Below, one piece after another: positions 24,062 through 41,287 of a stretch of 64,000 bases of DNA. Made by a program: the position numbers and the translations under genes. This DNA is from Blastocladiella emersonii ATCC 22665. Lineage: Eukaryota; Fungi; Blastocladiomycota. The stretch covers positions 1,178,001 to 1,242,000 of the forward strand of contig JANHCV010000003.1 in NCBI GenBank assembly GCA_025594325.1, written 5' to 3'. Under the pieces are notes generated by a model that worked only from the letters and a program-made list of their open reading frames with translations, searched no databases and was not told the origin of the DNA. The first letter of the stretch is position 1, and every line of letters begins with the position of its first letter.

Positions 24062-27045
24062 ATGTTACGACGCAATGCACCCTCGACGCGCGGCGGGTTC
24101 CGCCCGCCCGTGCGCAACAGCGCCCCGCCGGCGGCCGCTGCTGCTCCGGCGCCGAGTGCCGCGCCGGTCGCTGCGGCCAAGGCCGCGACGCCGATTCCGA
24201 CCCCGCCGTCGTCTCTGACTCCCGCGAAGCGCGGCCGGGCGCGCACTGTCGTCGACGACGAGGACGAGAGCGACGGCGGGAGCTCGACGGCACCGTCCCA
24301 GCCCTCGCAACCGGCTGCCCCTGCTGCACCGCCAAAACCGATGGCACCGACCCCTCGTCCGCGTAAGGCGCTGGAACCGCCAGTGAAGAAGCAGCGCGTG
24401 GTAGCCGAGCCGCCGGCCCGCGCTGCCGCGCCCGCGGCGATCATCTTCACCGCGCTATGGTGAGAGCTTTGCCGTCACAGCGTGCAAGTCTGATCGCTAA
24501 CAGTCGTGATCCAGGCGCAAGCGCACCAACAAGAAGCACAAGAGCTGGGACGGCGACGGCACCATTGCCGCGTCCGAGACGAGCACCATCCTCCGCGACG
24601 GAGCTGGGCGAGAGTGCGCTGCTTCACCCCCACACGCTGCCACAATCGCTCACTCGTGTTCCCGCTCGTAGCATCGCCAAGGGCCGCAAGATGGTCCTCG
24701 AGCCAGGCAAGGAGTTTACCATGGGCACGTACGAGGTGGGGGTCGGTGACGTGGTCGTAAACCAGCCCGCGGCCCCCGCGCCAGTCCCCGCCGTCGCCCG
24801 CACGACGCGCGCGTCGGCTGCTGCCGCCGCGAGCCCAACCCCGAGCCCGCCCGTGCAGCGCTCGACGACGCCCGTCGCCTCGATCTCGCGCGTGCGCCGC
24901 ACCAATCTGCGCCCGCTGCACAACCCCGACGCCGCCATCGCCTTTGTCCTGCCGCGCCCACCGCCCGAGCACGTTGCTGCGAGCAACGCCGAAGGTGTCG
25001 TCGACGTGGTCGTCGACCCCGTGCTCTCGTCCAAGCTGCGCCCGCACCAGCGCGAGGGCGTCCAGTTCCTGTACGAGTGCGTGCAGGGGTACCGCGAGGG
25101 CGGGCATCACGGCGCTATCCTTGCTGACGAGATGGGGCTCGGCAAGACGCTCCAGGCTATCACGCTCATTTGGACTCTGCTCAGTACGGCTTCTCGCTGC
25201 TCGCTCGACCTGTGGCACGACAACTCATGGCGGTACTACGTAGACCAGAGCCCGTACGGCCGCGAGCGCGCCATGAGCCAAGCGCTCGTCGTGTGCCCCG
25301 CGAGTCTCGTCGCCAACTGGGCCCGCGAGTTTCGCACCTGGCTCGGCGATGGTACGCCTCGTCTCGCCGGCGCTCCACGCGCACTGCGACCTGACTGACC
25401 TCGCCGCTTCCTCTCGTAGAACGCGTCCGCACCTTCCCCGTCGTGGCCGGCACCAAGGTCGAGGAGTTCATCCGCGGGAACGTGTACCGCGTCATGATCA
25501 TCGGCTACGAACGCCTGCGCATCCTGCAGGACGTGGTCTCGCAGTGCCGGTTCGGCATCGTCATCTGCGACGAGGGCCACCGCATCAAGAACCCCGCCAT
25601 CAAGACGGCCGCGGTACGCATGCTAGCGCGACCACGCTGCGATCCTCCGCTCTGATCCTCGTCCCTCTGTCGCGTGTAGGCGCTCGAGAGTCTCGGCACG
25701 CGCCGCCGCGTCATCCTGTCGGGCACGCCGATCCAGAACGACCTGTCCGAGTTCTACGCCATGGCCGACTTTGTCAACCCGGGCATTCTCGGTACGGAGC
25801 CCGCCGTGCCGTCGCGCCGCACGGACCCGCTCAACTCACTCACTTGCGCGCGACGGTGTAGACACGCGCGCGGCGTTCAAGCACCGTTTCGAGACCCCGA
25901 TCGTCATGGGCCGTCAGCCCGACGCGTCGCCGTACGAGCGCAAGCTGGCGCGGGAGCGCACGCAGGAGCTCGCGGGGGTCACGGACCGGTTCGTGCTGCG
26001 GCGCACCGCCGAGGTGAACCGGCCGTACCTGCCGCCCAAGTGCGAGACGGTGCTGTTCTGCCGGCCCAACGGGCCGCAGCTCGCCGCGTACCAGTCGGCG
26101 CTCGCGCAGCTGCACGCGGAGCGCGACGATGGCGGCGGCGGCATCGACACGTCGATCTTGCAGTGGATCACGCGGCTCAAGAAGCAGTGCAACGCGGCCG
26201 ACGGCGTCAAGGCCGAGGTCGTCGGCGCGTTCCTCGACGTGGTGCTCGGCGAGACGGACGAGAAGGTGGTGCTCGTGTCCAGCTCGACGGCGTCGCTCGA
26301 CATCTTCCAGGGCCTGTGCGACGCGCGCGGCGTGCCCACGTTCCGGCTCGACGGGACCACGGCCGTCGAGAAGCGCCAGGACCTCGTCAATGCATTCAAC
26401 TCGCCCACGCACAAGACCCGCGTGTTTCTCCTCAGCGCACGCGCTGGCGGCGTCGGGCTCAACCTCGTCGGTGCCTCGCGGCTCGTCCTCACGGACATCG
26501 ACTGGAACCCGGCCGTCGACAGCCAGGCGCAGGCGCGCATCTGGGTACGCTCTGCTCTCACTGACCGTTGCCCATGGCGGAACGCTGACGGCCACGAAAC
26601 CCTCGTGTAGCGCGACGGCCAGACGCGGCCCGTCTTCGTGTACCGGCTGCTCGTGGCGGGCAGCATCGAGGAGAAGATGCTGCAGCGGCAGCTGACCAAG
26701 GAGAAGCTGCGCGACCACGTCCTCGAGGACTACGACGCGGGCCCGGTTGACGAGTCGGCCAACGTCGACGACTTTTCGACCGCCGAGCTCGCCGAGCTGT
26801 TTGACAAGGAGGCCACCACGGCCGCGTGCGCGTTCCACGACGCGCTCGACTGCGACTGCGCCGAGGACGGCGTGCAGGTCGGCGACGGCGGGTGGCGGCA
26901 CATTCGGGTCACGACGGTGCCGGTCGTGCAGGACGACGAAGACGAGGACGTGCGAATGCTGTTCCTCGATGAAGCGACGAGGTCGGTCGTGACGCGGACC
27001 CGCCGGTGCGTCTCGTACGTGTTCACGCGGGACGCCAAGGTGTGA
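24062..27045 (+). CDS. RAD54B: RAD54B/Rdh54-type SNF2 translocase, multi-exon
   Basis: N-terminal [20 protein letters not shown] (RAD54B-type); [76 protein letters not shown]. Confidence 0.92.
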
Positions 27046-27107
27046 TGGAGAAACAGAAGAGACATGCTTTTGGGTGCAATGACACTGTATTGATTCGGAC
27101 TGTTTGT

Positions 27108-27123
27108 GGTTTTAAGAAAAACC
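27108..27123 (-). promoter_or_regulatory. Histone 3' stem-loop of H2B
   Basis: Minus strand GGTTTT-TCTT-AAAACC followed by ACAAA, 85 nt after the stop; fits GGYYYU-UYUN-ARRRCC. Confidence 0.85.
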
Positions 27124-27208
27124 GTGATAGAGAGAGAGGGTTTTGATGGAGTACGGAGTTAGGGGAGGGTAGGTTGGAGCAGAACTGCGAGGGCCGAGGA
27201 GCGGCGGC

Positions 27209-27604
27209 TTACTGCTTGGTGGTCGAGGTGTACTTGGTCACGGCCTTGGTGCCCTCGGACACGGCGTGCTTGGCGAGCTCACCGGGGAGGAGCAGGCGGA
27301 CGGCGGTCTGGATCTCTCGGGACGAGATGGTCGACTTCTTGTTGTAGGCCGACAGCTTCGAGGCCTCCTCGGCGATGCGCTCGAAGATGTCCTGGACAAA
27401 CGAGTTCATGATGGACATGGCCTTGTTCGAGATACCGGTCTCGGGGTGCACCTGCTTGAGCACCTTGTAGATGTACGTGTTGAACGTCTCCTTGCGGGCG
27501 GCCTTGCGCTTGCCGGTCTTCTTCTCGCCAGTGGCGGCGGCCTTGACGGGGGCCTTGCCCGCGGGCTTCTTGGTGGCGACGGCGTCAGCGGACTTGGGGG
27601 CCAT
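27209..27604 (-). CDS. H2B: Histone H2B (intronless)
   Basis: MAPK...[23 protein letters not shown]...[41 protein letters not shown]. Confidence 0.99.
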
Positions 27605-27780
27605 GGTGAGGAAGTTGATGCGTGGTGGTGGTGGTGGTGCGCTACGTTGCAAGGAGAGCGTATGGGAGAGCAGACGAAGAAGGGTGCGGGCGGGCACCAG
27701 GGGTTTTTGATGCGCGTGTGGCTGTGGCTGCCGATGCAAGCGCGAGACTCGCTGTGCGTCAGTCCGCGGTCGGCCGAGAG

Positions 27781-27884
27781 ACCCACGTGGCCACGTGGCA
27801 GCGAAAATCGCTCCAGCTGCAGCCACGAGGCAGCGAGGTCAGCCACGTGCGGGGCTGAATTCTGTTCACCCACGTGGCCACGTG
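27781..27884. promoter_or_regulatory. CACGTG cluster in the divergent H2B/H2A promoter
   Basis: Five CACGTG (27784, 27792, 27844, 27871, 27879); 17-mer ACCCACGTGGCCACGTG repeated at 27781 and 27868. Confidence 0.6.
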
Positions 27885-28122
27885 CACGCATTTTCTCTTT
27901 CTCGCAGCTCCCACGGCTGCATGCGGCTTGCTCGCTCGCTCGACAGTGCACACGGCACCTTCAAGTAGACGCCGGTCCCCCGCGCCGCTCTCTCTCTCTC
28001 TGTCTTCGTCGTCGTTCACGTCTACTGCTACGAAACGCATCATCATCACCACGCTGAGCTAGCCACCGTCGCTCGCTCACCGTCTTCAATAACCGCACAT
28101 CTCCAACAACAACACCAACAAC

Positions 28123-28521
28123 ATGGCCGGCAAGGGTGGCAAGAAGTCCGTCGAGGCGGTCAAGGGCGGCAAGTCGCGCTCGTCCAAGGCCGGGCTCCAG
28201 TTCCCCGTCGGTCGTCTGCACCGCCTGCTGCGCAAGAGCCACTACGCGGCCCGCATCGGCGCCGGCGCGCCCGTGTACCTCGCCGCCGTGCTCGAGTACC
28301 TGGCCGCCGAGATTCTCGAGCTCGCTGGCAACGCTGCCCGCGACAACAAGAAGTCCCGCATTATCCCGCGCCATCTGCAGCTCGCCATCCGTAACGACGA
28401 GGAACTGAACAAGTTGCTCGCCAGTGTTACGATCGCGCAGGGCGGTGTGATCCCTAGCATTGCACCTCAGTTGCTGCCGGCCAAGGGCGGAAAGAAGAAC
28501 GCCGATTCTGATGCCGAGTAA
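28123..28521 (+). CDS. H2A: Histone H2A, copy 1 (intronless)
   Basis: [14 protein letters not shown]...[44 protein letters not shown]. Confidence 0.99.
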
Positions 28522-28653
28522 GTCGGCGGCGGCGGCGGGGTCGGCGGGTATCATCGTGGTCGGCGGCGACCAAGTCGGCGGCCGCGGTCCCTGACCCCCG
28601 ACCCCCACCTCACCCACCCACATCTCTCTCCCACTCCTCTCTCATTCTCTCCC

Positions 28654-28669
28654 GGCTTTTCTAAAAGCC
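28654..28669 (+). promoter_or_regulatory. Histone 3' stem-loop of H2A copy 1
   Basis: GGCTTT-TCTA-AAAGCC followed by ACCAA, 132 nt after the stop. Confidence 0.87.
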
Positions 28670-28849
28670 ACCAATACAGAGCAGCTATTCAAATAATTAT
28701 TTTGTGGGGTGACTCGATCAGGGGTGGAGTGAAGCGGAGTCGGTGGTCGGCCGACGCGTGTGGCGCAACGGTCGCGTCCAACTTTATGAGTCTCCCCTCT
28801 CTCGCTTAGGCTCATCGCTGTCGCCTGGTCTGGAGTAGAGTGTGTCGCT

Positions 28850-29257
28850 TGCTCCAAGTCTTTGAGCGAATGCGATGAGCGCGACCGAGGCCCAATGCGG
28901 AAAAGGTCTGTTGCTCGTGTCCGCCGCGGCCATGGATGACCACCAGGGCCGATCCTTCCTCCTCTGGTGCATGCTTGTCCGTCCTCGCCCGTCTTCAGGA
29001 GCTTGGCTGCGGCTCTCCTGGGGTTCTTCTTAGCGGGAGCTTCAGGGTCGGTTGTTTCAAGTCTTTTGAGAGGGTACAGATAGCGCGGCCAAGCTAGAGT
29101 GAGGAGAGGGTCGCTTGCGCGTGTCCGCCGCGGCCATGGCCATCACAGTTGATCTCTCTCGCTCCCCTTGCGCGCGCGTGCCGGTCCTCACCCGTCTTCA
29201 GGAGCTTGGCTGCGGCTCTCTTAGGGCTCGTCGTAGCGGGAGCTCAGGGCCGGTCGG
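28850..29257. repeat. Two diverged tandem copies of a ~204-bp unit (mirrored at ~38918-39325)
   Basis: Shared blocks CAAGTCTTT(T)GAG (~28855/~29058), CGTGTCCGCCGCGGCCATGG (28916/29120), CCCGTCTTCAGGAGCTTGGCTGCGGCTCTC (28988/29191), TAGCGGGAGCT(T)CAGGG. Confidence 0.8.
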
Positions 29258-30544
29258 CGCACTGTCCACTCAGATCAGCGACCATCAGGTTCGGAGCGAT
29301 CTAGTCCTCCGCGTCTTCATCGCTTCGAGTCTCGTTTGATGGGGTAGCCGCTTGAGATAGGGTCAGCACGTACCCTTGAGCCCCTGAGCGCCGAATGAGC
29401 CGACCGCGAGTGGTCAGGAACTTGGCAGTGAAGGAACGGGGCTCGCACACGACTCTCTCGCTGTCGCGGACCCATGGTCCGCCGCGGCCGCCGTGACGAC
29501 TTGGGGCGCCGACCCCGCTCGTCTCGCCCTACTCTCTGGACAAACTCTGACCTGTAGGCGGCCTGATCCGCTTCCATCCCCACGAATGAGGATCGTCGGG
29601 CGAGTGGCGCAGCGCGTCCGAGTCGCAAGTCGGAGGCGCATCGAGTGGCGCGACGCGACCCCGAAGCGGCTCGCTCTCTTCAAGCACCGAGATCACAATG
29701 TAAACTCATGCATACGCGCCCGCTACTTGCTGCATTATGATCCATGGCAACCTGGGAGCGCCTGAGCGGCGGTGATCGAGCGCTCCCGTTGGGGGAAATC
29801 GCTGGGCCTGCGCGGGGCAAGCTAGACCCGCTTCGCTTCCTCAACGCCGTCGAGCTCTGGTCCAAAGGACGTCGCCGATTGGCCTGTGAAACTTCGGTGA
29901 CGGCACCGGAGCCAAAATCACTTCTTGACGTGCTTTCACTACACGGAGATCGATGACAGCGCCTACACAAAACAGTGCAGCCACTATGAGCGCAAGTAGC
30001 TGAAACTCTTCGTTTCTGATCTGAGAGAAGCTTCTCGCCGTCGGGTAGTTCGACGCACGCACGGACGGGTTGCTTGCGCGGGTTGGTTGCGGGACGCACC
30101 GTCTTGGTGCTCGCGCGCAGCTGCTGCGGACGCGGTCGCAGTCGCATCGTTCCCAAATCGCACCGCATGCTCTACTCGCATAGCTTTGTTCACGCTGTTG
30201 CTCGCCGTGACCCAAATCGGCGCTGCGCGTGCTCACTGACTCGCAGGTGCTGATCAAGGGCGCCGAGACGCAGCTGTCTTTGCCGCTGAACCTGACGTGT
30301 CGTTGGGTTGCGCGCGTGGCGGAGCGCAACCACGGCGAGGGCACGGCGCACGGTGAGGCTCAAACAGGTTGGTAGCAGGAGACACCAACATGATGCGCCG
30401 TTGAATGGTTGCAAGGCGGCGGCGTCGTTGCGCACGGGGTTCACAAGAAAGCGAGGCGATCTGCCGCGCATCCATCGCGCATCCATGTCGTTCCCGCGGG
30501 CCACATGGCGCGGACGGCCGATGCGAGCGTGACCATCTGCTTAG

Positions 30545-31549
30545 GCGTGTCCCCGCCGACGAGATGTATGCCGCGCTCGTTGCCGCGATATCACGCGACC
30601 ACGTCAGCCACGTCGGCCCTCAGCGCGGTCGCAGCTGCTGCGACCACATCGGCTAACGGGAAGGCGGCCTCGTCCTCGTCGCCAACATCCCCGGCCGCGC
30701 CACCACCAGTGGCACCGGTGCCGTCGCCGATCCAGGGCAACGTGCTGTTCGGGTTCGACATGGACAAGCGCGTCGACCGCAAGTTCGTGCTGTCGATCGC
30801 CATGAAATGCGCCGACGTCAACAACCCGTCCAAGCCGCTCCGCCACTGCACGCAGTGGACCGCCTTCATCATGGAGGAGTTTTTCCGGCAAGGCGACGAG
30901 GAGCGGCGGCGAGGCATGGACATCTCGACGCTCATGGACCGGTACAACACGGATATCCCGAAGTGTCAAGTGGTACGCTTGTCTCGGGCATCGTGCGAGT
31001 GGGGCGGACGTGAACTGACTGTGCGTGTGCTCGAATCGTCTCCGTAGGGCTTCATCGACTTTGTCGTGGCGCCGCTCTTCGACGTGTGGGGAAGGTTCAT
31101 GAAGGACGACATCAAGCCGCTCGTGACCAACATTGCCAACAACAAGGGTACGTCGACTCGCGCATCGCGGTTTCCGTCCGCTGTCACTGACCTCGCCGAA
31201 TCTTGTAGTGTACTGGAAGGCGAAGATGCAAGAAGCGCAGGCCGCCGCGGCCGCTGCCGCAGCAGCAGCGACGCCCGCCGCCGCGCCACCGGTGCCCAAG
31301 GTCGAGACGCTGCCGCCATCTGCGCCGTCCGACTCCAGGCCACCACTGAACAAGGGCGAGAGTTCCAGGTCGCTCGCCAACGGGAACGGCTCGCCGGCGG
31401 CACCGCACGGCGCGGCATCGCACGCGGCGTCCAACACGGCGTCGGCGGCGATCCTCGTGTCCAAGGCCGAGCTGGGCTCCCCATCACACGACGTGGTCGT
31501 ACCCCTCAAGACGGCCACGCTAGCGCGGCAAGACGGCCCGGGCGTGTAG
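30545..31549 (+). pseudogene. Class I cyclic-nucleotide phosphodiesterase remnant (metal-binding core missing)
   Basis: C-terminal PDE motifs MKCADVNNP, EEFFRQGDEE, CQVGFIDFVV intact with canonical introns. Upstream piece DEMYAALVAAIS lies in another frame; no HD..H, SVLEN or TD motifs found. Confidence 0.65.
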
Positions 31550-31774
31550 CTGTGACTACTGTGCTAGACCATCTGCTCATTTGAATTGCTTATTGATTCC
31601 GTTGTATTTCGAGCGAGCGTGGTTGCTGAGGAAGGGGGGTCAGGCTAAGGTGGAGTGAAAGACGCGTTGCGCCACAGCGTGCTTCGTGCGGCGTGGCTTG
31701 AGCGATCCCTTCGGCCTTCGCAGACCGCAAGCTGCTCTGCTCACTGCACGATCTCCCACGCACCACGTAAACCA

Positions 31775-34700
31775 ATGAATCAATATGCAACTGGCGGCAT
31801 GCGACGGCGGCTGTACGACCCGCTCGTCAGCGACGCGCCGTCGCCGGGCGCAGTGAGCGACACGCCTTTGATTGACGGCGGCGGCCGCACGACACCGCTA
31901 TCGCCGCTTCCTCGACATGCTCCTCGGCTCTCACGGTTCATCAAGAGTGAGAGTTCCGGCGAACGTATGGCTTCGCCACCTGTGCAGCGCGCGATTCCCA
32001 TACCTGCTCCGCGGACTGCGCCAGCTCGAGTTCCCGTCATGGACGGCGGCGAGGGCAGCGCGTATACGTGGCGGATCAGTCCCGACCCACCACCTCCGCC
32101 TCCGTCGATCGATCATGAACTTGCTCCCAACGAGGCGGTTCTCAGCCACGACGACATGCGCATGTCGTGGCAGCGGCCGCCGCCGTTCCGCGCGCGGGCC
32201 GCGAGTGTGGACTCGCATACCGGTGGGTCCTGGGTCCTGAGAATGCTCGCACGGTTCAATATCCAGTCGTCCACTTGGTTGCCGCTCATCGTCGGGAGCA
32301 TCATTGCTCTGATCGGCGTCGGTACGCGACACGGCTGCGATGCGGGACCGCGTACCATTGCTAACCTGTGCAACGCCTCCAGGTGCCGCTCTTGGACTGC
32401 TTCTCTGGTTCAACGGCGTCGAGACGCGTACCTTCCAGCGTGACTTTCACACCCAATGCCAGCTGAGCGTCCGGTCGCTGGAAACGGTGATGCAGGTCCG
32501 GCTCAAGCAGTACGCTGAGAATGTGGCCGCCTTCACGTACTCGAGTCGCGAGGTTACCAACGGTACGCCCTTTTCTCATTCTCTCGAAGCATGCTCTCAC
32601 TGCCGGGATACTGCACTTCCAGACACCTTTATCAACTTCGTCAAGCGCTCGTCGTTCAATCCAGCGATCGTGTACTCGGTCTCGGTCATGCCCGTCATCA
32701 CGCCGAGCCAAATCCCGCTCTACAACTCGCTGTACACCAAAAACTTCTTCAACAATGACTCGTCCGTTGTGGCCGACGACCAAGTCGCGACTCCGCTCCC
32801 GATAATGTGCGTGTCCCGCTGGCTGTCCGATTCCGCGCCAACTCATTGCCACGCAACTGTAGCTTTCCAGAGGCGCGCTTCTCGTCGTCCATCGTCGGCA
32901 TGAACATTCTCTCATCGCCGCCACGTCGCAGGGCTGTCCTCGAGACGAACCGTACGCGGATGTGGGCAATCACGCCGCCGGTGCTTCTCGTGGACATCAA
33001 CCAGATTGGCATGATCTCGTTCTTGGTTGTCCGCGAGCGACCCGTAGCGACGACTCTCACGCCCTTCACGAAGTGGTTCGCCGCGGTCACTTTGCTTCTC
33101 AAGGACCTCTTCACCGAAGCCTTGGACCACACGCGCGGCGTGCCGACGCGTACCGAGGCCGCGCTTCGCATCGTCTACCCGCAGAGCCAGGAAAAGGTCT
33201 TCACATACGGACCGACCGACCCGGCCGACCTCGTGGTCCGTGACCGCTACGTGCTTCCGTTCCACGCGGTCAACGAGTCACCGTGGACGACCGAGTGCAT
33301 CCCGTCGCGGCCGTACCGTGCCCGCTTCCGCACCATCTGGCCGTGGGTCCTCCTCGGCGTGGTGCTCGCGTCGTTTGCGCTCATGGCCGAACTCGCGCGT
33401 CGCGGCCTCAAGCGTGTCATCGTGTCGCAGCAAACGCTGCACCAGCTTCGCGTGCAGGAACGGCTTTTGGGGACGTTGCAGGAGTATTCCAAGGCCATTA
33501 CACAGGCGATTCCCGATGCCATGGTCCTGCTCGACTCAGACGGCCGGATCATCGGCGTCAACGACGCGACCATGGAGATCACGGGCTACTGCATGGCCGA
33601 GCTGAACCAGATGCACGTCTCGGCGCTGCTCGTCGTGAGCGATGACGGCGGCCAGCTTCCTCCCTTTCACCTCTCTCCCGCGTCCTCTCAATCAACTTCT
33701 TCGGGCTCGGGCTCGGGCTCGCGCTCGACTTCGAGTACCGTCGCTTCCGTCACGAGCTCTTCGGCCACCAGTACGTCGCACAGCAGCAGAACCCTCGCAC
33801 CGCCTCGATCGCTTCCGCTTGAGCCAGGTACGCGCGAGGGCACGGTACGACGCAGCGACGGCTCGACGCTTCCCGTCCAGCTCTCGATCAGCATCGTCGA
33901 GGCGAGCGAGATTGTCGACCAGCAGCAGCGCGACTCGGCACGGCCATGGACCGTTTCGCCCGTGGTCACGGTACACGGACCCGCTGCTGCCCACGAGGTC
34001 ATGTCGCGGCACACGGTCGCCAACGAGTTTGCGCAGATCGTCCTCTTCCACGATATTTCGGACCAGGTCGAGCACGTCCGCGTCGCGGCCGCGCTTGGCC
34101 GACGCGCGACCGAGGCGGCCCAAGCGCGCGACCGGCTGCTTGGCTTCATTCTGGGCAGCGTCGCCAACCTCGCGAGCGACATGGTCACGGACCTGTCGAA
34201 CGCCGAAGAGCTTCTCGAGGAGCGAGGTCACGTCGGCGAGCTGGCGGACGCGAGCGAGGCGGCGCGGCACATGAAGGCCATGCTCGACGACGTGGCCGGG
34301 TTCGCAGGCATCGCTATTCCGCCCGCTGCTGACGCACTCGCTTCGCCTAGAGTCGGCGGTCCCGCTCAACCACTCGAGTTGGTGCTCCGCCGCATCATCG
34401 ATTCCGCTCTGGAACAGCGCCGGCCGACGGTTCAGGCCAAGCAGCTCGCGATCCTTAACGACATGCAGCTCGAGGGTCTCGACGCGCAGCAGTCCGTGGC
34501 TGCCGCGCGGTTCCTCGACTCGGACGCGGGCACCGGGCTCCGCGCCGTGATCGCCAAGACGGTGGCCGTCGGCGTCGGTGCGTCGCTTCCGCTCGCGCGC
34601 TGGCTCGTGCTCGTGATGGTCGTGCCTGTCGAGGATCCTATGGGCCCACCGATCAATCGGCCAGCGACCCCGCGCGACTCGAGTCTCGCAGCGCGTCACC

Positions 34701-35053
34701 CGCGTTCGTCTCGGAGCGACTCGTCCATGACGCGCCTCGAGGTCAGCCTTTCGGTGACGATCAGCCGCGTCGCGCCCGGGTGCATCACGATCCGGCCGCC
34801 GTCCAATGGCGGCGACGCGTCCGCCGCCACGAACGGTGCCGGCTCGGAGCAGTACCAGGACCTCGACCTGTCGCTCGGCTCGCGCGGCGCGCGGTTCGGC
34901 AACGTTGCTCTCACGTTCGCGGCGCTCACGCAGATGTCGGCGCGCATGGGCGGGTCGGTCGAGCAGCGCATGCCGCGCGTGAATGCCAGCGATGGCACCG
35001 AGCTCAAGCTCGTGGTCCGCGTTCCTATCGTTGTGCGCGCGGAGCGGCAGTGA
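31775..35053 (+). CDS. TM-CHASE-TM-PAS sensor with degenerate histidine-kinase-like C-terminus (4 exons)
   Basis: Two TM helices flank a CHASE-like region (SSREVTNDTFINFV; VGMNILSSPPRRRAV..AITPPVLLV); PAS AIPDAMVLLDSDGRIIGVN..ITGY..HDISD; HisKA/HATPase-like segments without the conserved His/Asn/Gly residues. Confidence 0.8.
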
Positions 35054-35548
35054 ATTATTCTGTGAGATACAAGAGAGTTATCGTCCTTGTTCCCGGTCCG
35101 TCTGACGCGCTGCGCCACCACGTGCACTTGAGGCGCGCGATGCGACCCGTACGGAGCCACTGATTCGCTTGTTTGCTACGATCAGTGCTGTCGCAGAACA
35201 GCATAGCGATGTCGTCAGAAGCTGCATCACGACGTCGTGTAAGAGTTGTCGATTTAATCATGATGGTTTGATTCACGCGTGCGCCACGACTTGCGGTTGA
35301 GGCGCACGTTCTGACCCAAGCGTGGCCGCCGAGCAGTCCTTCGGCACAATCAGTGCTGATGAAGCCGGCCTCGACACGTCCCATCCAAGCAGTTCAGGCT
35401 TGGAGAGCGGTTCCAACGAGGATCGACTCAGCGCGCACCTCGAGGCCTCGCGAACCATGGATTTCGACAAAAACTTCATACATTGCGATTCTACTACTTC
35501 ACTCTGTTGTACATGGCTCCCACGAACGCCGCAGACGAGCGGGCGCGC

Positions 35549-38431
35549 TTACAGGCCGATGCCGCGCAGGAACGCCTCCGAGTTGGGCTCGCGGCCAAGG
35601 AACTTGCGCAGCGAGACAAACTCGTCGCGTGAGCCGCCGGGCGCGAGGACCTCGCGCACGTACTCGGCGGCGGTGCCCGAGTTGAAGATGCCCTCGGCCT
35701 CGAAGCGCGAGTACATGTCAGCCGCGTACACGAGCGACCACAGGTAGCCGTAGTAGCCTAGTCATACGAGGAGACGAGAGGTCAGTCTGGCGGTCGCAGA
35801 GCAGCGAGAACAACGGAACGTACCCGAGTCGTAGCCGCCGGTGATGTGCGAGAAGGTGCACTGGCCGCAGGTGCCCGCGGGCGGCGCGATGAGCGACACC
35901 TCGCGCGACATCTTGTCGTACAGCTCGGTGGTGTTGGGCGCCTTGGTACCGGGCGCGATCGTGTGCACGGCCATGTCGAACAGGCCGTAGCGCAGCTGGC
36001 GCAGGTTGAACATGGCGGCGCCAACGTTCTTGGTCGCGATCAGGCGGTCGAGGATCTCGGTCGGCACCTTGGCGCCCGTCTCGTAGTGGCTCGACAGCTG
36101 CACGAGCGCCTCCTTCTCCCAGATCCAGTTCTCGAGGAGCTGCGAGCTACACGTGATGTGAAGGTAGCGGGGTGGCGAGGTGGCGGGGTGGTGGGGTGGC
36201 GAGGTACGCGCGATCGCGACGCGTCAGAGTCAGTTTTCTCAACCCCCACTGCACCGATTTCGCCCAAACTCGAAAAACGAGGAACGTACGGAGCCTCGGA
36301 GAAGTCTCGGGCCGTGGCGGTGCCCGAAAACATGCCGTACTTGATGCGGGAGCCGAGAATGTGGTGGAAGATGTGCCCGGCCTCGTGCGCGAGCGTCACC
36401 ATCTCGTCGTGCGTCAGGAGCGACGGCGCGTCCTTGGAGGGCTTCGTGAAGTTACACTTCATTGCCACGAGGGGCGTCTGGTAGGTGCCGTCCGAGAGCA
36501 GGCAGCCGGGGCGGAGACCGAAAACGGCGGCGTGACCGAAGGCTCCCTCGCGGGGATGCATGTCTAGGTAGAAGGCGCCGCGGTAGGTCGAGGTATGGTC
36601 GAACACGCGCCAGGCCGTGACGTCCGGGTGCCAGAGGGCGGCCTCCTTGGTCACCTCCTCGATGCGGATGTTGAACAGCTGCTCGTACAGCTTGAGAAGG
36701 GCGGCGAGGAACGTGTTGTACGAGAAGTACGGCTTGAGCTCGTCCTGGTCAAAGTTGAACTCGCGCTCGACGAGCAGGTTGCTGTAGTACGACGTGTCCC
36801 ACGAGTGGAGCGCGTCCTCGGCGGGGAGGCCGGCGGCGGCGCGCTCGGCGTTCTTGAGGTCGAGCAGCTTCTGGTACTCGACGCGGCCGTGCGGCAGCAG
36901 CTTGTCGCGCAGGTCCTCGAGGAACCCGAGCACCGTCTCGGGGTTCTTGGCCATGTTGAGCTCGAGGCGGAAGTGCGCGTGGTTCTTGAACCCGAGGATC
37001 GCCGCCGCCGACGCGCGCAGCTCGACCATCTCCTCGAGGATCGCCTGGTTCTCGGGGCACACCGACATGCGCGCCACGTCGACCTTGCGCCGCGTCTCGG
37101 CGTTGGTGCACTTGCGCAGCAGCGGCAGCGTGTCGGGGTACGACATGGTGACCTTGAGCGAGCCCTTGGCGTCGCCCTCCTCGACGAGCGCGAGGCTCGA
37201 GATGTAGCTCTCGGGCATGCCGGCGAGCTCGTCGCGCGTCACGGCGACGAACGTCTTGTCCTCGGCCTTGTTGCGGGCGAAATCGCGGGCGAGGTCGGCA
37301 ATGCGCTTGCGGATGGCCGTGAGCTCCTCGCGCTTGGCGTCGGGCAGGCCGAGCCCCTGGCGCTCGTACCCCTGCATAATCTTCTCGACGAGGCGGCGGT
37401 CCTCGTCGTCGAGCTGCGACTGGTCGCCGAGCTTCTCGACGGCGGCCTTGGCGGCGCGGTACAGGTCGACGCGGGCGCCGGCGTCGATGGCGAACTCGGA
37501 CAGCGCGCGGGCGGCCTCGTTGCTGGCCTCGCGCGTCGGCTTGTCGGGCGACACCTGCTGCAGGAAGTAGAGCGCCGACGACTCGCCCTTGGTGCGGTTC
37601 TCGAGGCGCGCCATGCGCTGGAACACGGACTCGAAGATGCACTCGGCGGGGTCGAGCGACGCGATCTCGTTGTACACGCGCGTCATGAGGCGGATCACCT
37701 TGTCCGTGTCGGCCTTGATCTGCGCCGGTGTGCGCAGGATCACGTAGTCGTCGAGGTGGTTGGTCCACACGGTCGTCGACTCGGTCTCGGCGGCAACGGC
37801 GGCGGGCTTGGCGCGCTTCTGCAGCTCGGCCTCGAGTGCCTGCGTCTCGATCCACTTGGACTGGATCGACGCGAGCCCGTCCTCGAGCGACTTGACCTTG
37901 GCCTTGAGCGGCGACAGGAGCGGCGTCGCGTCCGTCTTGCCGCTGCGCAGCTTCTCGAGCACGCGGCGGATCGGGACCTGGTCCTGCTTGGCGCTGAGCG
38001 GCATGGCGTCCTCGATGGCGGCCGTGAGCGAGCCGGCGAGCGACGACCCGAGGCGCGCAATGAAGCTGGGCGCCCACTTGTGCACGAACGGCGAAGTAAA
38101 CCGTCTGTGAACACGTCGAGCCCGCTCAGCGAGAAACTCGGAAACAATGAGTTTCACCACCTGCGCTCGTGCGGCGTGACGGTCTCGGTGAAGGTGCAGT
38201 GGCTCGTTTAGGCACTGCTCTTGATCTCCTTGTTGCAGGAGGTGTGGGCTCTCGCACCAGCGGCTCCGGTGCCGTCACCGAAGTTTCACAGGCCAATCGG
38301 CGACGTCCTTTGGACCAGAGCTCGACGGCGTTGAGGAAGCGAAGCGGGTCTAGCTTGCCCCGCGCAGGCCCAGCGATTTCCCCCAACGGGAGCGCTCGAT
38401 CACCGCCGCTCAGGCGCTCCCAGGTTGCCAT
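35549..38431 (-). CDS. M3 thimet-oligopeptidase/neurolysin (Prd1-like) metallopeptidase, multi-exon; putative first exon inside the right repeat arm
   Basis: FYLDMHPREG..GHAAVF, HEAGH zinc motif, FSEAPSQLLENW, GYYGYLWS, FLGREPN. Putative exon 38431-38258 splices in frame (GTGCGA..CTAAAC..CGCAG, 38257-38161); alternative start ATG 38004. Confidence 0.92.
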
Positions 38432-39505
38432 GGATCATAATGCAGCAAGTAGCGGGCGCGTATGCATGAGTTTACATTGTGATCTCGGTGCTTGAAGAGA
38501 GCGAGCCGCTTCGGGGTCGCGTCGCGCCACTCGATGCGCCTCCGACTTGCGACTCGGACGCGCTGCGCCACTCGCCCGACGATCCTCATTCGTGGGGATG
38601 GAAGCGGATCAGGCCGCCTACAGGTCAGAGTTTGTCCAGAGAGTAGGGCGAGACGAGCGGGGTCGGCGCCCCAAGTCGTCACGGCGGCCGCGGCGGACCA
38701 TGGGTCCGCGACAGCGAGAGAGTCGTGTGCGAGCCCCGTTCCTTCACTGCCAAGTTCCTGACCACTCGCGGTCGGCTCATTCGGCGCTCAGGGGCTCAAG
38801 GGTACGTGCTGACCCTATCTCAAGCGGCTACCCCATCAAACGAGACTCGAAGCGATGAAGACGCGGAGGACTAGATCGCTCCGAACCTGATGGTCGCTGA
38901 TCTGAGTGGACAGTGCGCCGACCGGCCCTGAGCTCCCGCTACGACGAGCCCTAAGAGAGCCGCAGCCAAGCTCCTGAAGACGGGTGAGGACCGGCACGCG
39001 CGCGCAAGGGGAGCGAGAGAGATCAACTGTGATGGCCATGGCCGCGGCGGACACGCGCAAGCGACCCTCTCCTCACTCTAGCTTGGCCGCGCTATCTGTA
39101 CCCTCTCAAAAGACTTGAAACAACCGACCCTGAAGCTCCCGCTAAGAAGAACCCCAGGAGAGCCGCAGCCAAGCTCCTGAAGACGGGCGAGGACGGACAA
39201 GCATGCACCAGAGGAGGAAGGATCGGCCCTGGTGGTCATCCATGGCCGCGGCGGACACGAGCAACAGACCTTTTCCGCATTGGGCCTCGGTCGCGCTCAT
39301 CGCATTCGCTCAAAGACTTGGAGCAAGCGACACACTCTACTCCAGACCAGGCGACAGCGATGAGCCTAAGCGAGAGAGGGGAGACTCATAAAGTTGGACG
39401 CGACCGTTGCGCCACACGCGTCGGCCGACCACCGACTCCGCTTCACTCCACCCCTGATCGAGTCACCCCACAAAATAATTATTTGAATAGCTGCTCTGTA
39501 TTGGT

Positions 39506-39521
39506 GGCTTTTAGAAAAGCC
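39506..39521 (-). promoter_or_regulatory. Histone 3' stem-loop of H2A copy 2
   Basis: Mirror of 28654-28669. Confidence 0.87.
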
Positions 39522-39653
39522 GGGAGAGAATGAGAGAGGAGTGGGAGAGAGATGTGGGTGGGTGAGGTGGGGGTCGGGGGTCAGGGACCGCGGCCGCCGA
39601 CTTGGTCGCCGCCGACCACGATGATACCCGCCGACCCCGCCGCCGCCGCCGAC

Positions 39654-40052
39654 TTACTCGGCATCAGAATCGGCGTTCTTCTTTCCGCCCTTGGCCGGCA
39701 GCAACTGAGGTGCAATGCTAGGGATCACACCGCCCTGCGCGATCGTAACACTGGCGAGCAACTTGTTCAGTTCCTCGTCGTTACGGATGGCGAGCTGCAG
39801 ATGGCGCGGGATAATGCGGGACTTCTTGTTGTCGCGGGCAGCGTTGCCAGCGAGCTCGAGAATCTCGGCGGCCAGGTACTCGAGCACGGCGGCGAGGTAC
39901 ACGGGCGCGCCGGCGCCGATGCGGGCCGCGTAGTGGCTCTTGCGCAGCAGGCGGTGCAGACGACCGACGGGGAACTGGAGCCCGGCCTTGGACGAGCGCG
40001 ACTTGCCGCCCTTGACCGCCTCGACGGACTTCTTGCCACCCTTGCCGGCCAT
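39654..40052 (-). CDS. H2A: Histone H2A, copy 2 (identical protein to copy 1)
   Basis: Same 132-aa translation; lies inside the right repeat arm; no H2B partner. Confidence 0.97.
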
Positions 40053-41287
40053 GTTGTTGGTGTTGTTGTTGGAGATGTGCGGTTATTGAAGACGGTGAGC
40101 GAGCGACGGTGGCTAGCTCAGCGTGGTGATGATGATGCGTTTCGTAGCAGTAGACGTGAACGACGACGAAGACAGAGAGAGAGAGAGCGGCGCGGGGGAC
40201 CGGCGTCTACTTGAAGGTGCCGTGTGCCAGGCCGTGTGCTCTGGCGAGCGAGCGAGCAAGCCGCATGCGGGAGCAGAAAATTGAGCGCACAAACCTGGTC
40301 AACTTTTCACCCGCCATCCTGTGTGTACGCTTGAAGTTCGCGCTTTACACTCGCTATTCGGCGCTCATTTCTGCTCACGGGAAGCTGAGATCGGAGTTGG
40401 TATTGGCGCCTGTGAACCAGCAGTCGCGTTCGTCAGACTTGGGTGAGCCATGGCCATGTCCATCGTCACACCCGTGGCCAATTATTAGCCACTGCCCGCT
40501 ACTCGAGGCGGCGTTGGGTTCAATATGGACTCCTTCGAATATCGATCTTGAGCGAGAGTTGAAATCGCAACGCGTTGTGTAAGGCTACGGCTCAATCGCG
40601 GTGGCCATGGTCGCGGCCATGGGCCGTGGTCACGGCCATCACGATCAGGCGTTTTCCTGCACTCACCGATTTCATAATGACGGTAGTTGCCGCCGGCGAC
40701 ACCCCTTTACCATCCATTCACGTTTTCTGGGAAGGTATTCGTGTGTCAAGCAGCCCGGTATCAGTCGGATTGGACGCTTCTTTGTCCGCGGCCACGGTCA
40801 TCACAACCCCGTTGCGCATCACTCCCTTGGCGTGTGGTTCACAACGTGGAGCCGGCGGGTGGTCTTCTTGTTGTTGCTGACGACGCCGCTCTGTCTCACA
40901 AGCTTGTCGCGAAGTTGGTGGTCGGCGAGGCGAGCCTGGCATCAATCAAGCCGGTCGGACGCCGACATCGCCGCGGCCATCAGTTCCGGTTGCTCGTTCA
41001 CCCTTGCGCACCGCGCGGCTCGCGCTATGACGTGCAAGTCGATCCCGAGAACGAGTTTTCCAACAAAAAGCCTTCACGCGCGACCACAAACAGACCTTCA
41101 CGCGGAACGACGAGCACGAGGAGACGGCAGGTTGATCAGGGAGTGTAGTTTATATAAAGATGGATATCATCCCGACAAGCAAGCAGCGCGGACCGGATCA
41201 GGACCCGCGCACGACCGACCATCGACACGCCACGCCATCAGAGAGAGAGAGGGGAACAGGAGGGGACCGGGACCGGGGAGGAGACGC

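Follow-up and report, generated by a model that had tools for sequence, protein, structure and literature searches.

To our knowledge, histone stem-loops and SLBP were long believed to be missing from fungi. According to bioRxiv 10.64898/2026.10.14.759114, Lopez and Samuelsson (2008) described histone stem-loops together with an SLBP homologue in Dictyostelium and Chlamydomonas; fungi are reported in that study to have neither the stem-loop nor SLBP. The citing preprint, by Zhao, Bond and Ni Leathlobhair (October 2026), describes SLBP orthologues as well as stem-loops from Blastocladiomycota, and the early-diverging fungi in which it finds both are Cryptomycota, Blastocladiomycota, and Chytridiomycota. 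The hairpin in Blastocladiomycota is therefore already known at the level of the phylum. According to the same preprint, Allomyces H2A and Catenaria H4 transcripts contain the stem-loop and then poly(A), LSM10 and LSM11 never co-occur in one fungal genome, and U7 factors are sparse in fungi. A G-C pair at stem position 2 and a U at loop position 3 are given there as determinants of SLBP binding, and stem-loop-like hairpins are reported also from fungi without SLBP (10.64898/2026.10.14.759114).

Histone genes and 3' stem-loops of Blastocladiella emersonii

The window, that is, the whole 64-kb stretch of DNA analyzed here, comes from Blastocladiella emersonii ATCC 22665 (assembly GCA_025594325.1), and both of its strands were scanned with Rfam. 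It contains an intronless H2B gene of 131 aa on the minus strand (27209..27604; ORF, Pfam PF00125 Histone) and an intronless H2A gene of 132 aa on the plus strand (28123..28521; ORF, PF00125 and PF16211 Histone_H2A_C), which diverge from a promoter region common to both, with paired CACGTG boxes (27605..28122). The H2A protein ends in SDAE, and the SQEY motif is absent. A second H2A gene, identical to the first and identified by ORF and Pfam, is located on the minus strand (39654..40052) without an H2B partner. It belongs to an inverted repeat, the left arm of which (27948..29913, 1966 nt) includes the first H2A gene with its stem-loop as well as the 175 nt that precede the ATG; the right arm (38262..40227) is 100% complementary and lies 8348 nt from the left arm. 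No H3 or H4 genes were found within the 64-kb window.

Hairpins had been proposed in an earlier note on this DNA, and they are present exactly where it placed them, at 27108-27123 on the minus strand, 28654-28669 on the plus strand, and, as the mirror copy, 39506-39521 on the minus strand. The H2B element (27103..27128, minus strand) reads AUCAC, GGUUUU-UCUU-AAAACC, ACAAA and scores 27.8 bits with Rfam Histone3 (RF00032), and the H2A element (28649..28674, plus strand) reads CUCCC, GGCUUU-UCUA-AAAGCC, ACCAA and scores 30.7 bits. The stems begin 85 nt past the stop codon of H2B and 132 nt past that of H2A, behind uninterrupted ORFs, which agrees with the distances and the intronless genes described previously. 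The two sequences are also independent, as had been claimed, with a true compensatory change at stem position 3, which is C-G in H2A and U-A in H2B. The element behind the second H2A gene (39501..39526, minus strand; sequence match and Rfam Histone3) is identical to that behind the first and lies within the 100%-identical 1966-nt repeat, and it therefore counts as a copy and not as a third independent case. Judged from its sequence, the second H2A gene with its hairpin is a recent identical duplicate.

For both H2A and H2B, the hairpin is the minimum-energy structure, alone as well as in a 121-nt context, with an MFE of -5.0 kcal/mol (z -5.0) for H2B and -6.7 kcal/mol (z -3.3) for H2A. The motif GGYTTYTNTNRAARCCAC occurs 3 times in the window versus 0.00 expected (100 shuffles). 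A permissive scan with Rfam Histone3 yields just three matches in the 64 kb (E values of 8e-5, 8e-5, and 1e-3), all of them on the sense strand downstream of histone genes. The bit scores are below the gathering cutoff of 34 bits, which is why a default Rfam scan of the window is empty. These scores and the shortness of the element are what an origin of the hairpins by chance in AT-richer 3' UTRs would have in its favor. The probability of such an origin is negligible, and it is refuted by the shuffle statistics, by the confinement of the three matches in 64 kb to the sense strand behind histone genes, and by the conservation in relatives and the covariation described below.

Conservation and covariation in Blastocladiomycota

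The element exists and folds, it lies downstream of both genes on their sense strand, and it is conserved with covariation across Blastocladiomycota. In four further blastoclad genomes, namely, Catenaria, Paraphysoderma (two loci), Sorochytrium, and GCA_003429145.1, both H2A and H2B are followed by Rfam Histone3 matches of 21.9 to 34.4 bits, and one Paraphysoderma H2A orthologue, at 34.4 bits, lies above the gathering cutoff. The distance from stop codon to stem in these relatives ranges from 45 to 192 nt. In an alignment of 12 hairpins from five genomes and two gene families (H2A and H2B), all 72 stem cells are paired (100%), and pairing drops to 17 to 58% in a control with slid partner columns. 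Two of the six pairs, at stem positions 3 and 6, are changed on both sides, each occurring as C-G, U-A, and U-G. The covariation score is 0.290, compared with a shuffled mean of 0.172, and was reached by 1 of 500 shuffles. Positions C-1, G1, G2, U4, U5, loop U1 and U3, the following A, A, C, and C, and A+1 are invariant in all 12 hairpins, so that the second stem pair G-C and loop U1/U3 are constant throughout the blastoclad elements. Mean identity across the 12 hairpins is 0.82 in the core versus 0.30 to 0.35 in the flanks. The 3' flank begins with A in 12 and with AC in 11 of the 12 hairpins; the 5' flank is C/U-rich in B. emersonii and Catenaria, and Paraphysoderma and Sorochytrium retain AAAC or CAAC. 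A lineage model of the hairpin matches these elements alone, at 39 to 49 bits.

With the lineage model, no hairpin match was obtained at the H2A-H2B pairs of Ustilaginaceae (smut fungi), in line with the previous statement that Dikarya lack the element, or at those of Mortierellaceae. The element is also absent from H2A.X-type genes (SQEY, intron-bearing) at three blastoclad loci. A chytrid SQEY-type H2A carries the hairpin GGCGUU-UUUU-AACGCC 65 nt past its stop codon, and because of this gene a general rule that variant H2A genes are without the hairpin was dropped and is not claimed here.

Conservation in relatives, covariation, and empty controls together argue that the B. emersonii hairpins are genuine histone stem-loops and most probably serve as sites for SLBP. 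The perfect pairing, the covariation, and the invariant determinants in blastoclads lend support to the proposal of the earlier note that a metazoan-type SLBP element may have been kept in an early fungal lineage. Alternatively, the hairpin could be a relic that was inherited but is no longer bound by SLBP and has at most a general role in 3' UTR stability or termination. The loss of the A-rich 5' flank, the long and variable stop distances (45 to 192 nt), and the stem-loop-like hairpins of fungi without SLBP (10.64898/2026.10.14.759114) would be consistent with a relic. However, this explanation appears highly improbable, since none of the SLBP-relevant positions varies among the five genomes or in either gene family, whereas identity in the flanks has fallen to 30 to 35%, compensatory changes preserve the stem, and SLBP is reported for the phylum (10.64898/2026.10.14.759114). 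The combination of invariant SLBP positions, compensatory stem changes, and diverged flanks indicates continuing selection, presumably on a specific protein-RNA contact.

Formation of the mRNA 3' end

The PAS-like motif AAUACA occurs 4 nt past the H2A stem and 17 nt past the H2B stem, and AAAUAAU occurs 22 nt past the H2A stem. Only such scattered PAS-like hexamers follow the hairpins, among which neither a conserved downstream element nor a uniform poly(A) signal was found, and no purine-rich downstream element is common to the 12 hairpins in the 110 nt past the stem. A convergent SNF2-family helicase gene on the plus strand (ORF, Pfam) has its stop codon at 27043..27045, and 57 nt separate this codon from the 3'-flanking sequence of the H2B hairpin. 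U7 snRNA has no Rfam match in the 64-kb window, which says little about the whole genome. A six-frame motif look revealed no SLBP in the window; two SRRSW matches were spurious, being located in GC-rich junk frames, and do not represent SLBP. The literature on B. emersonii histone ESTs and cDNAs yielded nothing useful on polyadenylation.

For B. emersonii, we infer that an SLBP is encoded and that it binds the hairpin, and we infer also the mode of mRNA 3' end formation. The hairpin would stay within the mature H2A and H2B mRNAs, which would be cut a short way downstream and then adenylated. With Allomyces and Catenaria as the model, such a stem-loop plus poly(A) state would be likelier than a U7-dependent cut 5 nt past the stem. 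We hold with good confidence the reading as a whole, in which the H2A and H2B hairpins are genuine animal/protist-type histone 3' stem-loops, the 3' end is likelier stem-loop plus poly(A), and the second H2A gene is a recent duplicate.

A complete animal-type pathway, in which a U7-snRNP-like complex would cut approximately 5 nt past the stem and the hairpin would form the 3' terminus of non-polyadenylated H2A and H2B mRNAs, agrees with the 3' flank, which is conserved as in animals (A in 12 of 12 and AC in 11 of 12), and with the gap of just 57 nt between the H2B element and the helicase stop codon, which favors an H2B mRNA end close to the hairpin. It is nevertheless unlikely, given that LSM10 and LSM11 are never found together in a fungal genome, that poly(A) occurs past the stem-loop in two blastoclads (10.64898/2026.10.14.759114), and that no conserved purine tract resembling a histone downstream element follows the hairpins; the unmatched U7 in the window has little weight for the genome. 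Rather less probable again is the fuller proposal that B. emersonii would combine SLBP with U7/LSM11-like cleavage, producing non-polyadenylated, replication-coupled H2A and H2B mRNAs that end in the hairpin, with poly(A) used by variants (SQEY-type H2A.X). If true, B. emersonii would be the first fungal example of the complete system, as opposed to the "intermediate" stem-loop-plus-poly(A) state. The life cycle of B. emersonii is naturally synchronous, and the fungus would thereby be a convenient organism for studies of the coupling between hairpin and replication and of 3' end formation.

Comparison with known systems

The B. emersonii elements share with the animal Histone3 element a 6-bp stem with GG/CC at its base, a 4-nt loop with U1 and U3, an upper stem with a pyrimidine 5' strand and a purine 3' strand, an AC-rich 3' flank (ACCAA and ACAAA, in agreement with ACC(C)A of the animal element), and a sense-strand location within the 3' UTRs of canonical histone genes that have no introns. 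Unlike the animal element, they have CUCCC or AUCAC in place of CCAAA as the 5' flank, stand 85 to 132 nt past the stop codon instead of 25 to 60 nt (a distance called critical in animals), have no recognizable downstream element, and score below the Rfam cutoff. Dictyostelium and Chlamydomonas, which like B. emersonii are not animals, also carry a stem-loop close to the 3' end of their histone mRNAs (Lopez and Samuelsson 2008, as cited in 10.64898/2026.10.14.759114).

The preprint 10.64898/2026.10.14.759114 covers the same phylum and the same element and draws the same inference, namely, that an ancestral SLBP/stem-loop system was kept and was lost in Dikarya. The B. emersonii hairpins are followed by PAS-like motifs, as are those of its "SLBP-SL-PAS" class. 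The presence of the hairpin and SLBP in zoosporic fungi shows that animal-type histone mRNA control predates the animal-fungus split and was lost later in fungi. Since the October 2026 preprint made this point for the phylum, the B. emersonii locus mainly confirms it. The main text of the preprint does not name B. emersonii, and the present analysis adds to it a pair-by-pair covariation count for H2A and H2B and three blastoclad H2A.X-type genes without the element.

Histone genes and 3' hairpins of Blastocladiella emersonii

The window sequence matches contig JANHCV010000003.1 of assembly GCA_025594325.1 and has a G+C content of 67%; the JANHCV accession is that of the B. emersonii ATCC 22665 genome (PMC9730499). 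A divergent pair of intronless histone genes occupies 27209-28521, comprising H2B (27209-27604, - strand; 131 amino acids, with a Pfam Histone match) and H2A (28123-28521, + strand; 132 amino acids, with Pfam Histone and Histone_H2A_C matches). The H2A protein has SDAE at its C terminus, with no SQ(E/D)-hydrophobic motif. Neither H3 nor H4 is encoded in the 64-kb window. In the H2B-H2A intergenic promoter, CCCACGTGGCCACGTG is present twice at 27781-27884, as paired CACGTG boxes. A second H2A (39654-40052, - strand), an exact copy of the first, lies inside an inverted repeat of 1966 nt whose arms (27948-29913 and 38262-40227) are 100% complementary, each bearing H2A and its hairpin and together flanking a segment of 8348 nt. 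Identity between the arms starts 175 nt 5' of the ATG of H2A, and the second H2A thus has neither an H2B partner nor most of the shared promoter. The repeat may have arisen by gene conversion or through a duplication that happened very recently, or it may stem from the assembly.

Both canonical genes, H2A and H2B, bear a conserved, covarying histone-type hairpin in their 3' untranslated regions (UTRs). The H2B element is AUCAC-GGUUUU-UCUU-AAAACC-ACAAA (stem-loop at 27108-27123, - strand) and the H2A element is CUCCC-GGCUUU-UCUA-AAAGCC-ACCAA (28654-28669, + strand; mirror copy at 39506-39521), beginning 85 and 132 nt past the respective stop codons. Rereading of the window reproduced exactly the hairpin sequences, coordinates, and 85- to 132-nt spacing from the stops of intronless genes given in an earlier note, which had claimed metazoan-type histone stem-loops on H2B and both H2A genes. 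All three hairpins are present, but only two are independent cases, since the second H2A is an inverted-repeat copy. The claim itself is borne out by the Rfam Histone3 model (RF00032), folding, and shuffle statistics. The Rfam default scan of the window reported nothing, and the Histone3 scores of the H2A (30.7 bits) and H2B (27.8 bits) elements are below the gathering score of 34. In a permissive Histone3 scan of both strands of the 64 kb, the histone-gene hairpins were the only matches (E values of 8e-5 and 1e-3). The hairpin is the minimum-energy fold of both elements, alone and in a 121-nt context, with energies taken alone of -5.0 (H2B) and -6.7 (H2A) kcal/mol, and 0 of 200 shuffles were as stable. 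A consensus pattern derived from the elements matched the window three times, versus 0.00 expected in shuffles.

Conservation and covariation in Blastocladiomycota

The nearest H2A proteins all belong to Blastocladiomycota (Catenaria, Paraphysoderma, Sorochytrium, Allomyces, and B. britannica). Every divergent H2A-H2B pair fetched, namely, one locus each from Catenaria (L005), Sorochytrium (L008), and assembly GCA_003429145.1 (L010) and two from Paraphysoderma (L006 and L007), has a Histone3-type match on the sense strand behind both genes (21.9 to 34.4 bits). The H2A and H2B genes of L010 (contig QQTW01008621.1) are near-identical to those of Sorochytrium milnesiophthora. The Catenaria H2B model (L005, 1099-1629, - strand; 176 amino acids) includes the hairpin (1189-1204); the true stop thus probably lies short of the end of this public model.

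In an alignment of 12 blastoclad elements, stem positions G1, G2, U4, and U5, loop U1 and U3, both A's, and the closing CC are unchanged, as are the bases that adjoin the stem, C on its 5' side and A on its 3' side. Pairing holds in 72 of 72 stem cells, with C-G, U-A, and U-G all found at each of stem positions 3 and 6, and drops to 17 to 58% when the 3' partner columns are slid by 1 to 3. The core averages 0.82 pairwise identity and the flanks 0.30 to 0.35. Such a pattern marks an RNA structure under selection that makes sequence-specific contacts. Both determinants named for the stem-loop binding protein (SLBP), G-C at stem position 2 and U at loop position 3 (bioRxiv 10.64898/2026.10.14.759114), are invariant in the alignment. 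A covariance model built from these elements recovers only them, at 39 to 49 bits, the next best score in 106 kb being 10.9 bits. At Ustilaginaceae (Dikarya) and Mortierellaceae H2A-H2B pairs, Histone3 gave no match at E up to 5, and the blastoclad model gave nothing above 11.2 bits.

Blastoclads also have separate, intron-bearing H2A.X-type genes with SQEY ends (P0036, P0034, and P0027). A hairpin search of three of these, in B. britannica (L004), Allomyces (L009), and Sorochytrium (L011), returned no match; within Sorochytrium, therefore, the canonical pair bears the hairpin and the SQEY-type gene lacks it. A general rule that SQEY-type H2A genes lack it was dropped, since the SQEY-type H2A of the chytrid Phlyctochytrium arcticum has one, GGCGUU-UUUU-AACGCC, 65 nt past the stop (L016, 2620-2635, + strand). 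In this hairpin, stem position 4 is G-C and the flank is AAUG; it was missed by Rfam and scores 11.9 bits with the blastoclad model.

Probable SLBP binding and proposed 3' end formation

The putative binder of the hairpin is a fungal SLBP orthologue, as suggested by the SLBP orthologues reported from Blastocladiomycota (bioRxiv 10.64898/2026.10.14.759114). The favoured reading is that the hairpin would be kept in the mRNA, with the end formed slightly downstream and then adenylated. It draws on poly(A) tails that follow the stem-loop of Allomyces H2A and that of Catenaria H4, on the sparseness of U7-associated factors among fungi (bioRxiv 10.64898/2026.10.14.759114), on AAUACA at 4 nt (H2A) and 17 nt (H2B) and AAAUAAU at 22 nt (H2A) past the B. 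emersonii stems, and on the lack of any visible shared purine-rich downstream element after the hairpins. Cutting of the pre-mRNA immediately after the hairpin, leaving the mRNA end there, appears rather unlikely; the conserved flank 3' of the stem and the mere 57 nt between the H2B element and the stop codon of a convergent SNF2-family gene speak for it. The heptamer AAUACAG occurs at 28673-28679 (+ strand) and 27086-27092 (- strand), and is not kept in relatives; it could be a variant poly(A) signal or have arisen by chance.

Relation to previous work and to the animal element

The B. emersonii stem-loop finding is correct and well supported, yet explained already. A preprint of 16 October 2026 describes stem-loops together with SLBP orthologues from Cryptomycota, Blastocladiomycota, and Chytridiomycota and loss in Dikarya (bioRxiv 10.64898/2026.10.14.759114); its main text makes no mention of B. 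emersonii, and no other paper tying SLBP to chytrids or early fungi was found among the papers searched. The present analysis adds negative controls, a covariation count made pair by pair, and a contrast in blastoclads between SQEY-type H2A and the canonical genes.

Unlike the animal element, the B. emersonii hairpins fall under the Rfam Histone3 cut-off, and the distance from stop codon to element in blastoclads (45 to 192 nt) is longer and more variable. Directly 5' of each B. emersonii hairpin lies an unstructured C/U-rich tract, CUCUCUCCCACUCCUCUCUCAUUCUCUCCC (28600-28653, + strand) and CCCUCUCUCUCUAUCAC (27124-27150, - strand). The 5' flank of the animal element is A-rich, whereas that of B. 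emersonii and Catenaria is C/U-rich; Paraphysoderma and Sorochytrium share the A-rich flank with the animal element.
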